From sequence record OP310984.1: a stretch of DNA of 64,000 nt, one strand, 5' to 3'. Below are positions 52,680-56,222 of the stretch, in pieces. Under the pieces are notes generated by a model. It ran no database searches, was not told the origin of the DNA, and saw only the letters and a program-made list of their open reading frames with translations. The position numbers and the translations under genes are program-made. Numbering within the stretch: the first letter of the stretch is position 1; the number at the start of each line of letters is the position of its first letter.

Positions 52680-53843
52680 ATGTCTACTAAATCTCAACTA
52701 CCAAAGAAAATCTTCAATGTTGCTAAGAGTGATTATCATCTACCGGAAATTATTCTTGGAGATGATCCAGGTCTACTAGATTCAATCCACACTCATTATC
52801 CTAAAATGTGGGAGCTATATAAGCGTCTAAAGATGCTTGATTGGGATGAGCTAGAATTTGACTTTTCCACTTGTCTAGTAGAATTTGAAACGTGTGATAA
52901 ATCAACTTATGACATGATGATTAAGACACTGGCCTGGCAATGGGAAGCTGACTCTGTAGCCAGTCGTTCCATTGTTAATATTCTATCACCTGTCATGACA
53001 GATTCACGAGTATGGGCGGGATATGTACGTATTAATGATAATGAAGACGTACATGCTTTAACTTATTCTGAAATTGTACGTAATAGCTTTAAAGATCCTA
53101 AAGTTATTCTAGACGAAATTCTTAGGGTAGAAGAAGCACAAGAACGAATGGTTGCAGTAGCCCGCACTATGGGTGAAGCACATGACGCAGTTCATGCGTA
53201 TGCTCTTAATCAGGTACCCAATGATCAAGAACTTTACAATAAAGTATTCATGTTCTTCATCGCTCTATATTTCCTAGAACGTATCCAGTTCATGGCATCC
53301 TTTGCAGTAACCTTTGCTATTGGTCGTACTGGTGCATTCCAGCAAATTGCAGCCGCTGTTAAGAAAATTGCCCAAGACGAATTCGAAATCCATGCACAAT
53401 ATGGACAAGAAGTTATTCGTGCACTACTGGCAACTGAACGCGGTAAACTCGCTTACAGTCAATGTAAAGATAAAATCATTGAACTACTATGGGAAATTGT
53501 AAAGACTGAAGTTACCTGGATTAATTATCTATTCTCTGAAGGTCGTGAACTAACTGGTGTTAATGCGACTAAACTTATTAACTGGGTACTTTTCAATGCT
53601 AATGCCGCAGCAACATTCCTAAGTATTGAAAATGATGTTGTAGAACAGTATCAAGTGGAGTTTAAAGAATCAGCTGGATTTGATTTTGTTTGGCCAGAGA
53701 AGAACCCACTTCTTTATATGGAAGACTACCTAGATATTTCATCAACCCAAGCATCTCCTCAGGAAGAAGAGAAGCCTGATTACATGGTCAACGTTGTAAA
53801 TGATGTTGGTGAAGAAGAAGAATTTGAGGTTGACTTCTTATGA
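52680..53843 (+). CDS. nrdB: ribonucleotide reductase class Ia beta subunit
   Basis: Diiron ligands EADSV, EDVHALTY, LERIQFMASF, DEFEIH. Confidence 0.95.
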   Translation: MSTKSQLPKKIFNVAKSDYHLPEIILGDDPGLLDSIHTHYPKMWELYKRLKMLDWDELEFDFSTCLVEFETCDKSTYDMMIKTLAWQWEADSVASRSIVNILSPVMTDSRVWAGYVRINDNEDVHALTYSEIVRNSFKDPKVILDEILRVEEAQERMVAVARTMGEAHDAVHAYALNQVPNDQELYNKVFMFFIALYFLERIQFMASFAVTFAIGRTGAFQQIAAAVKKIAQDEFEIHAQYGQEVIRALLATERGKLAYSQCKDKIIELLWEIVKTEVTWINYLFSEGRELTGVNATKLINWVLFNANAAATFLSIENDVVEQYQVEFKESAGFDFVWPEKNPLLYMEDYLDISSTQASPQEEEKPDYMVNVVNDVGEEEEFEVDFL

Positions 53844-54253
53844 TTAAGATTATCGCATTCGTAGTTTTAATGTGGTCCACTGTCCTATTTGCAGCAACTG
53901 AAGTAAAATCAACTACAGATGGTATTATTGCACATTCAGAATGTCAGCTAGTTGCTAAAGATAGTAGTGTTGTCGGCACTACTGTTGGAGGTGCGGTTGG
54001 AGCCACCGCAGGCGCTGTATTAGGTCGAGCAATCTTTGGTAAATCTGGAGGTTGGGTAGGTGGTTTAATCGGTGGTGCCGCAGGCGGCGCAGTCGGTAAT
54101 AATGTTAGTGCTACTGAAACATTTCAATGTAAACTGATTGTTAATACAGATGGCAAGCAGTACATGGTTCAAACAGTTACCAATGAAAAACCAAAGGTTG
54201 GTGATAAAGTCACTGTTGTTGAAATGAATGATGGTACACGAGATATAATGTAG
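53840..54253 (+). CDS. secreted glycine-zipper 2TM protein (YcfJ/SlyB-like)
   Basis: Signal peptide, GxxxG zipper GTTVGGAVGATAGAVLG...GGLIGGAAGGAVG, Cys pair, C-terminal beta-barrel ending PKVGDKVTV. Confidence 0.75.
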   Translation: MIKIIAFVVLMWSTVLFAATEVKSTTDGIIAHSECQLVAKDSSVVGTTVGGAVGATAGAVLGRAIFGKSGGWVGGLIGGAAGGAVGNNVSATETFQCKLIVNTDGKQYMVQTVTNEKPKVGDKVTVVEMNDGTRDIM

Positions 54254-54338: not shown

Positions 54339-56222
54339 ATGAATAAAATGCTAAACTTCCTAAACCGTACGCTATATAGCGGTACTGAAAAAGTATCTTC
54401 AAAAGCTACACCAAGTCTAGAACACTTTAAAACAAATGTTGAACAAGTAGATAAAAAGATTCTACAACCCTTTAGTACTAAATTTAAAACCATTCTAAAA
54501 GAATGTTACAGTAATGAAGAGTGGGTTGAAGAACAATCATTTATTGAAGAACCTATTGATCTTGGTTCAGCTGCACGCGGTCTTACCGAGCGCGGTATTA
54601 TGCGTGGTGATTGGGGACGCTTAGCGCATTCCACTATTAAAGAAGCAGAAGGTATGATGCGTACTTATAGTGGTCGTCTAAATGAAGATATGGAGGCATC
54701 TGAAATTAATGAAGTAATTCAAGATATGCCTTATAACTTCACAGCTGGCTCAGCTAATACTAGCCGTTTAGAAGAAGATGATTCTATTTTTGTTGAAGCA
54801 GATACAACTGTAGTTGAACCTCTGTCTAAGCAGACTCTGCCAAAAGTAGCAGAACTTACTAACCAACTAGTAGAAGTTTATAACCGAATCACTGAAGAAT
54901 TTACAGAAACTGGTATTGCTAAAGTTGAACAAGTTGAACAGCCAGCAGTTCTTGTAGCACTTGGTGAGATCATTAGTAGTTTTAATAAACTAATTGATGC
55001 TTCATGTGGTGCTCTACCAGTGGAAGAAACTGTTATTGTAGAGGAGGATCCGTTACCTGCCATTGTTACTGGTCCAACTACTGAACCCATTGATGGTGAA
55101 ATTCCACCTGTTGATGCTATTAATAATTCTGCGGCATTAGAAGAGTTTATTGAAGAAGTACTAAGTACTAATCCAGAATTCATTAAATACCAAAGTATGA
55201 ATGATAGTAATATTGATTCATATCTAACTGGAGATGACTGGATTATACTAAAATTTAAAGATGGTTCTTATTATTTATACAATGCCCAGAGTGCTGGTGA
55301 AACAAATATAGAAATCATGAAAGATATGGCCGAAACTGGTAGTGGTCTTAATGGTTTTATAAATCGAGTTATTCGTGGCGGGTATGTAGAGAAGTCCATC
55401 ATTAATACTCCCGGTTTTATACAAGTCTCAAATGAAGGTCTTATCGACACCATTAAGAGTATCTTCGACTCTGGCCCTGAGATCAATCTTGATAAAAAGA
55501 AGAAAGCTATTGCTACACTGAAAAGTACCTATGGTGATGCCAAATGGGTGGCAGAAGCAAAGCTTAAAACCGGCGAAGTAAAAGTATCGAGTTACGAGAC
55601 GTTCGCGTCTAATGATCCTAAGACCGCAAAAGCCAATATCACTAATGCTGTAGCTAAAGCTGATCGTCACAACCAGAAAGTTCTGGATGAGAACAGTAAG
55701 ATACTGGCCCCCGTGGTTAATCTGTTCAAAGGGAATGATTGGCAAGACCCTAAGAAAGTCGCTACTCTTCTGGCTGAATGGAAACCCAATGTAAAGACAA
55801 ACTTCCAAGAACCCAAATGGCCAGATAATGCTGGTGCTAAGATTAAGTTGCTTGATGCTACCGGTATTGTGGAAGCAGCTAACGTTATCATTGACGTTCT
55901 GTCTAACAACACTAAGACTATTGCGGACACTTGGGTAGCCCAGTATCCTGACCTATCTGTCAATGGGGATATCTACAAACATAAGCTATCCACTATTAAA
56001 GATAAAGATGCTCTTGAGGATGTATATCTGCTGGCTAAAAGGGCCGATAATGCCATTCTTAACATTCATGCATCGTACGACGACGCTAAGGTTGAATCTA
56101 CATATCGAGTATTTGCTATCGACATGTTGAAACTAATGCAAGCATCTGTCAGTAGCTTCCCAAGTGGTTCAACCGTAGAGAACACCAATGAACGCAATAC
56201 GGTCATTGGTATTGAAGAATAA
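54339..56222 (+). CDS. internal head (ejection) protein, gp303-like, with an embedded KTSC-like module
   Basis: 627 aa, acidic propeptide, prohead-protease-type ALE and SNE sites; SNE is followed by GLIDTIKSIF, typical of phiKZ inner-head paralogues. Confidence 0.65.
   Translation: MNKMLNFLNRTLYSGTEKVSSKATPSLEHFKTNVEQVDKKILQPFSTKFKTILKECYSNEEWVEEQSFIEEPIDLGSAARGLTERGIMRGDWGRLAHSTIKEAEGMMRTYSGRLNEDMEASEINEVIQDMPYNFTAGSANTSRLEEDDSIFVEADTTVVEPLSKQTLPKVAELTNQLVEVYNRITEEFTETGIAKVEQVEQPAVLVALGEIISSFNKLIDASCGALPVEETVIVEEDPLPAIVTGPTTEPIDGEIPPVDAINNSAALEEFIEEVLSTNPEFIKYQSMNDSNIDSYLTGDDWIILKFKDGSYYLYNAQSAGETNIEIMKDMAETGSGLNGFINRVIRGGYVEKSIINTPGFIQVSNEGLIDTIKSIFDSGPEINLDKKKKAIATLKSTYGDAKWVAEAKLKTGEVKVSSYETFASNDPKTAKANITNAVAKADRHNQKVLDENSKILAPVVNLFKGNDWQDPKKVATLLAEWKPNVKTNFQEPKWPDNAGAKIKLLDATGIVEAANVIIDVLSNNTKTIADTWVAQYPDLSVNGDIYKHKLSTIKDKDALEDVYLLAKRADNAILNIHASYDDAKVESTYRVFAIDMLKLMQASVSSFPSGSTVENTNERNTVIGIEE

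Follow-up and report, generated by a model that had tools for sequence, protein, structure and literature searches.

A KTSC-like domain and a putative processing junction in a gp303-type head protein of a phiKZ-group phage

The head of a giant phage of the phiKZ group holds dozens of packaged proteins, many of which are ejected. Propeptides in this group have ten times the length of those of T4; in the inner head proteins they exceed 100 residues and are believed to work in the manner of the T4 capsid-targeting sequence, the extra length being unexplained (PMC5694885). What a long N-terminal part of this kind might contain, and what it might be for, is the question raised by one gene in the window studied here, a stretch of 64,000 nucleotides from sequence record OP310984.1. 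The gene (positions 54339-56222, + strand) encodes a protein of 627 amino acids (aa) that is, by sequence and gene order, the orthologue of gp303 of phage phiKZ. A sequence-only reading of the window had seen in this protein a KTSC-like nucleic-acid-binding module bounded by two protease sites of an internal head protein, and had suggested that the module is released as a peptide and could be delivered with the genome. We favour another reading, at about even confidence: the N-terminal half, the KTSC-like domain included, would be a conserved targeting propeptide that the prohead protease cuts from a polymorphic C-terminal cargo.

The view that this is an internal head protein, processed and packaged, agrees with what is published for its phiKZ orthologue (bioRxiv 10.1101/2025.11.23.690004, PMC10449902). 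The preprint describes gp303 as packaged into the head, proteolytically processed, dispensable (deletions were obtained) and without known function. Semi-tryptic peptides place several cleavages in gp303 (PMC10449902), its peptides not being among those listed in the supplementary files of that paper that we searched. The cryo-electron microscopy literature that we searched on the phiKZ capsid and virion does not mention gp303, a result that we count in favour of the propeptide reading. The gp303 gene and the processing of gp303 are already known; the KTSC-like fold in the N-terminal half, the site-by-site conservation with its recombination junction, and the unnamed KTSC-like family to which the module belongs appear not to have been described. 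In the KTSC literature that we searched, jumbo phages figure in one survey only, where KTSC is a stand-alone protein of another phage group.

Candidate protease sites and the mosaic junction

The prohead protease of phiKZ, gp175, cuts after Glu at S/A/G-x-E. This motif occurs 11 times in the protein, against 12.1 expected from its composition, and because [SAG]xE is at chance frequency its presence alone carries no weight. Conservation was followed site by site in 27 distant jumbo-phage homologues (250-1298 aa, 19-34% identity, module near residues 60-143), the background chance of meeting a motif no more than three residues away from any one position being 0.14. The column of SNE58-60 holds S-x-E in all 27 of them, near residue 20 and behind a Leu/Ile-rich leader. 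The column of SNE364-366 lies in a V-S-N/Q-E-G block that is kept in 22 of 26, and the distant relatives additionally carry a P-G-M-E motif match directly behind the module. A [SAG]xE falls at most about 30 residues past the module in 30 of 30 sequences, with one or two matches in every homologue.

The two motifs that the sequence-only reading had placed around the module lie at the positions it gave (ALE266-268 at 55134-55142, SNE364-366 at 55428-55436, both on the + strand), and the stretch it had quoted between them corresponds to residues ~290-349. They did not fare alike as protease sites. SNE364-366 closes a linker (aa 353-366; 55395-55436, + strand) that is predicted to be disordered, and is the best-supported putative processing site; since residues 350-366 have a predicted local distance difference test score (pLDDT) of only ~33 in the full-length AlphaFold2 model, SNE366 would lie exposed between two folded parts. 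By contrast, ALE266-268, the putative upstream site, lies in the opening turn of helix 264-276, which packs against the domain, and none of the 27 homologues has a [SAG]xE within 3 residues of its column; an A-E-E lies ~5 residues upstream of that column in 14 of the 27. The picture of a module held between two protease sites is supported on its downstream side, by 22 of 26 homologues, the disordered linker and a recombination breakpoint 11 nucleotides further on, and not on its upstream side, where the one universally conserved site, SNE58-60, is far from the module.

Three further motif matches or patterns were set aside. AGE319-321 (55293-55301, + strand) is inside the fold, in the S-A-G turn that links strand 3 to helix 1; the turn is family-wide, [SAG]xE occurs at this column in none of the 27 homologues, and AGE319-321 is probably no processing site. 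GIE624-626 looked at one stage like a conserved C-terminal motif (14 of 24 at its column), but was dropped once the sequence ends were inspected, since its aligned columns do not lie side by side in the homologues. A motif found 82 residues past the conserved Tyr in every sequence was likewise rejected as partly numerical: in the relatives it is P-G-M-E and in the present protein SNE366, which aligns with their second site.

The breakpoint itself was seen by megablast. The aligned stretch of DNA shared with phiKZ, and likewise with 11 further phages, ends at nucleotide 1109 of the gene, with 97.6% identity before it; this final base of the high-identity phiKZ match is position 55447 of the window, 11 nucleotides past the SNE366 codons. 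The protein is ~99% identical to phiKZ gp303 up to residue 370; further on, BLASTP aligns 57 aa only, at 28%, and protein identity after the junction is <25%. Phikzvirus genomes that are nearly identical carry two very different alleles of the C-terminal domain of gp303: 35 records have the PA7 type, with at least 80% of the gene covered (all of it in 34), and 12 have the phiKZ type, with the first 59% only. Among the distant relatives, the same N-terminal cassette is joined to no fewer than three C-terminal types that are unrelated to one another. The identity break at SNE366, together with these varied C-terminal types, indicates that the two halves are separable modules joined at a conserved motif, and SNE364-366 looks like both a processing site and a module junction.

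Because the SNE60 and SNE366 columns are conserved, the linker is predicted to be disordered, identity breaks and C-terminal parts are swapped at the junction, and gp303 is published as processed and packaged, we read the N-terminal half as a propeptide. It would be a long one, running over aa 1-366 and made up of the leader, an acidic disordered stretch, the KTSC-like domain and the linker ending V-S-N-E. Through the KTSC-like domain the protein would dock on some conserved part of the prohead core during assembly. A gp175-type protease would then cut after Glu, with SNE366 and a leader site as the minimum and ALE268 as a possible addition. The C-terminal domain (aa 367-627, ~29 kDa) would be freed and stay in the head as a candidate ejected protein. 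The acidic propeptide pieces, among them the KTSC-like domain, would mostly be expelled, as is reported for propeptides with several sites (PMC9026906). In this scheme we infer three things: that the domain has a targeting role, which sites the protease uses, and what becomes of the fragments.

Several points weigh against the scheme. The conserved block at SNE366 runs into the next helix (G-L/I-x-D-x-I/V-K), and its conservation could be structural; in the relatives the module follows a leader of only ~20 residues and could belong to the mature protein as its N-terminal domain. A folded domain kept from bacteria to phage would be unusual for a disposable propeptide, targeting in T4 takes just ~10 residues, and no binding partner was identified. 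The first two of these points also speak for an alternative in which cuts at SNE60 and/or ALE268 take off only the leader and acidic region, SNE366 stays uncut, and the KTSC-like domain remains in the mature protein as a small adaptor or oligomerisation unit. The leader of the distant homologues, which ends V-S-x-E directly before the module, would then resemble a T4-type targeting sequence, and the domain is both conserved and well folded in its predicted structure. However, the linker before SNE366 is predicted to be disordered and exposed, every homologue has its one or two motif matches right behind the module, the recombination junction at SNE366 shows the halves to be separable, and several cleavages are reported in gp303 (PMC10449902). 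We regard retention of the domain in the mature protein as unlikely.

Outside the module, the N-terminal leader (aa 1-60; 54339-54518, + strand) has a net charge of +4 and holds the candidate cleavage motifs GTE15-17, SLE26-28 and SNE58-60. It is followed by an acidic low-confidence region (aa 61-263; 54519-55127, + strand), an insertion specific to the phiKZ lineage with pLDDT mostly <50; in the full-length model this holds for most of residues 1-268, residues 239-268 being below 50. The net charge of aa 61-268 is -29 and their isoelectric point (pI) 4.07. The acidic insertion, some 200 aa long, is not present in the distant homologues, in which the module begins near residue 60; they have an extra helix of ~25 residues that separates the two post-module sites. 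Behind the linker, the variable C-terminal domain (aa 367-627; 55437-56219, + strand), the presumed mature packaged cargo, is mostly helical, with pLDDT 65-86 over residues 367-610. Part of it is matched by phrog_28891. No Pfam family was found for aa 367-627, and a Foldseek search of the full-length model against the PDB returned only noise for the C-terminal domain and for the N-terminal region.

A predicted KTSC-type fold outside PF13619

The KTSC-like domain is encoded at positions 55128-55394 (+ strand), as placed by AlphaFold2, structure matches and hhalign, and consists of an N-terminal helix (aa 264-277) and a core of three strands and two helices (aa 283-352). An AlphaFold2 model of the module, made from an alignment of 81 sequences, has a mean pLDDT of 84, a predicted template modelling score of 0.72 and a core pLDDT of 81-97; its order is helix, three strands, two helices, short strand. 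In the full-length model the module has a pLDDT of 81-91. Foldseek against the PDB placed the KTSC protein 7x8c at the top (probability 0.93-0.96) and 4rgi among the top matches, with weak E-values. Against 48,161 representative chains, VIA-align gave 7x8c_A a Z of 6.1 (root-mean-square deviation 2.4 Å, 67 of 69 residues), the sole chain above Z 5, the next being at Z 4.4. A second structural comparison gave Z 6.4 for both 4rgi (69 of 71 residues) and 7x8c_B (68 of 70), with unrelated chains from Z 4.0. In BFVD the orthologues came first and proteins named 'KTSC domain-containing' directly behind them; the ESM Atlas yielded no usable match. On the predicted structure, the module has a KTSC-type fold.

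Two further structural likenesses should be noted. The C-terminal domain of HerA (residues 604-696), from the SIR2/HerA antiphage complex (8wld, 8wof, 8wj3, 8wiv), matches the helix and core as well as true KTSC proteins do, at Z 6.1-6.6 over 73-75 aligned residues and 19-21% identity; this is a match of fold only, without a link at the sequence level. A 70-aa 'structural protein' of Pseudomonas phage PA5oct, an unrelated jumbo phage (BFVD A0A4Y1LUS6), also has a KTSC-like fold, with a TM score of 0.63 on its own length.

Sequence comparison set the module apart from the KTSC family as Pfam defines it. The sequence-only reading had proposed PF13619 as the family to match, and this did not hold: Pfam gave no match at E≤10 for the whole protein or for a 103-aa segment of it, both falling below the curated PF13619 cut-off of 25 bits, and PF13619 did not match in any of the six frames of the nearest genome (G001). 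No NCBIfam model covers the module family, Pfam and NCBIfam scans of protein and module yielded nothing useful, and a search of the PDB by sequence, with the single sequence or with a profile, found no meaningful match. A HMMER scan with residues 262-372 against 1.84 billion representative proteins (E≤1e-3) showed the module to be carried by 566 proteins, and PF13619 touched just two of 81 family members, at best with E 3e-4. In five bacterial genomes with a stand-alone relative, the PF13619 model never found that relative; its matches were to other genes in two of the genomes, and the remaining three gave none. Since it never picks up the relatives in these genomes, we consider the module family to be separate from PF13619.

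Profile comparison hints at a remote link between the two families. An independent alignment of 45 PF13619 proteins was built for hhalign, which gave a probability of 50% (E 1.6e-4, 68 columns) against the 81-sequence family and of 76% (E 2.2e-5) against a compact subset of 12 sequences. The alignment pairs YLY312-314, invariant or nearly so across the module family, with the Y-x-Y (Y-Q-Y) of PF13619 members, which we take to be the central conserved motif of PF13619, and it keeps the C-terminal basic-x-x-Y (I/V-R/K-x-x-Y) in register. The likeness might in principle be that of a common small beta-alpha arrangement, with neither ancestry nor function shared and the module private to its own family. 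The Pfam model does miss the module, Z values of 6-6.6 are middling by the tool's own scale, and the hhalign probabilities are only 50-76%. Against this, KTSC comes top in the PDB by two aligners and KTSC-named proteins come next in BFVD, with 67-69 of ~70 residues aligned and at least 2 Z units to the unrelated chains; the Y-x-Y, an F two strands before it and the C-terminal I/V-R/K-x-x-Y all align; and two of 81 members reach PF13619 directly. We therefore think a chance resemblance very improbable. The module is probably a remote homologue of KTSC proteins: the fold asserted by the sequence-only reading is indeed predicted, with 7x8c and 4rgi as best PDB matches, and it is membership of PF13619 as defined that does not hold.

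Cellular relatives and the fate of the module

Most of the 566 module proteins are stand-alone bacterial proteins of ~75 aa that carry the signature Y-L-Y, S-A-G, M-K-x-L-A and G-x-G-L-N (P0004-P0153). They are spread over many bacterial phyla, and the one name that a source gave them was 'hypothetical protein'. A locus search with the 12-sequence subset as query revealed no conserved neighbour of the stand-alone genes across 23 loci (L005-L027); nearby genes include KwaB-like, WYL, NERD, PD-(D/E)XK/RNase H-like and Bro-N ones. The module is also found fused to HEPN (P0006), TIR (P0065) and WYL (P0068). In the TIR fusion (L036:6001-6735) it is at the C-terminus, and the gene is flanked by hsdS and hsdR in a type I restriction-modification operon, while the HEPN fusion (L037:1375-2409) adjoins a ThsB-type TIR gene. 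The three fusions are candidate defence proteins that lie outside the PADLOC models. This context fits a nucleic-acid or conflict-related sensing role of the cellular family, and it does not show the role of the phage copy. Two giant proteins (P0060, 2835 aa; P0100, 2307 aa) were left unused; each has 11-12 weak stretches, with Ig/dockerin and PdaC repeats in Pfam, which are probably repeat noise.

The cellular relatives bear on the idea that the KTSC-like piece (~aa 269-366) is freed by two cuts, kept on nucleic acid inside the capsid, and carried into the cell together with the genome. Its predicted fold is of the KTSC type; the KTSC protein 7x8c is reported to bind single-stranded DNA (Tian et al. 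2022, PMID 35809674, cited in PMC11237433); and comparative work treats KTSC as a DNA- or RNA-binding domain (PMC7824862, PMC9503650). Relatives of the module occur in cellular defence loci, fused to TIR, HEPN and WYL, the KTSC-like protein of 70 aa in PA5oct is named structural, and some abundant cleaved head proteins of phiKZ associate with DNA (PMC9026906). However, the cut at ALE268 that the idea needs falls at a site conserved in none of the 27 homologues, the module is only remotely related to the characterised protein 7x8c (19% identity), and the preprint passage that we consulted does not name gp303 among the proteins co-pelleting with DNA (bioRxiv 10.1101/2025.11.23.690004). The fragment 269-366 is, moreover, acidic (net -8, pI 4.3). 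The module alone computes to net -3. Its relatives carry a mildly positive mean charge (+1.5 to +2.4), and for true KTSC proteins the average is acidic. Finally, multi-site propeptides are, as cited above (PMC9026906), mostly removed from the head. The case for nucleic-acid binding by the module goes no further than analogy with a single characterised KTSC protein, and delivery of the peptide with the genome is less likely than its loss; we hold a retained, delivered peptide to be distinctly unlikely.

A bolder variant joins both halves. The KTSC-like piece would be kept and injected, to act on nucleic acid or to mimic the KTSC-like domains, for sensing or assembly, of TIR-, HEPN- and HerA-linked defence proteins of the host, and the C-terminal domain would be a second, fast-evolving injected effector. 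On this view gp303 would be a two-payload polyprotein, its N-terminal cassette serving as a portable tag by which arbitrary cargo is loaded into the heads of jumbo phages. We offer this as speculation, with little confidence that it is right. The propeptide reading remains the one that we prefer.

Genomic setting and comparison with known systems

The assignment of the gene to the gp303 type rests on its translation, a profile match and synteny. The profile phrog_24656 ('virion structural protein') spans residues 1-627 of the open reading frame at 54339-56222 with E=0. The DNA of the gene is 100% identical to that of Pseudomonas phage Wadjak 2 (OP310984), a Phikzvirus, and 99.8-99.9% identical to that of the PA7 records, OMKO1 and others. 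Two ribonucleotide-reductase genes, a small homologue of gp304 and the gp303 gene follow one another, and then come gp302 and a tRNA cluster; the position of the gene matches that of PHIKZ303 ('structural head protein') in phiKZ. No paralogue of the protein was found in the nearest genome, and a word-index protein search returned close orthologues only. Some orthologues (P0003) are annotated from a second in-frame Met, residue 4 here, so that the true start may be at 54348 (within 54339-54350 of the window). The gp304 homologue upstream (53840-54253, + strand; 137 aa) is hydrophobic at its N-terminus and contains an extended Gly/Ala-rich run resembling a glycine-zipper membrane segment.

Seen against the long propeptides of this phage group, the locus offers a concrete case, in which a folded KTSC-like domain is followed by a conserved protease motif and then by a cargo that is exchanged between otherwise near-identical phages. 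Should the N-terminal cassette direct packaging, the recruitment of new cargo would be explained, and the cassette could serve as a tag to load proteins into jumbo-phage capsids. The module also defines a widespread bacterial family, linked to defence loci, for which neither Pfam nor NCBIfam has a model.

The closest comparison is with phiKZ gp303 itself. The N-terminal 370 residues of the present protein are ~99% identical to those of phiKZ gp303, and its C-terminal 257 residues are a different allele, the PA7 type. Of the other orthologues, 201phi2-1 gp455, the Phabio protein and phiPA3 gp375 (phrog_24656, phrog_17428) have the module and its flanking S-x-E sites in common with it. The module resembles the KTSC family (PF13619; 7x8c from Methanolobus vulcani, 4rgi, YPO2434, from Yersinia pestis) in its size of ~70 aa and in the order of strands then helices; the Y-x-Y of strand 3, the F of strand 2 and the C-terminal basic-x-x-Y align, at a root-mean-square deviation of 2.4-2.6 Å over nearly the whole chain. 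It differs in having ~6 more residues in the helical part, an additional N-terminal helix and a signature of its own (the S-A-G turn, M-K-x-L-A and G-x-G-L-N). It is, moreover, embedded in a virion protein of 627 aa, whereas KTSC stands alone or ends a lysyl-tRNA synthetase.

As a packaging system, the proposed arrangement is most like that of IPI-III and Alt of T4 and of gp47, gp50, gp53 and gp54 of SPN3US with their long propeptides, in which a propeptide ends at a short x-x-Glu motif and a conserved targeting part is set on diverse cargo, the cargo being packaged and ejected (PMC9026906, PMC5694885). The T4 targeting sequences, however, are 10-19 residues long and unfolded, whereas the putative propeptide here would comprise 366 residues and contain a folded domain with relatives in cells.

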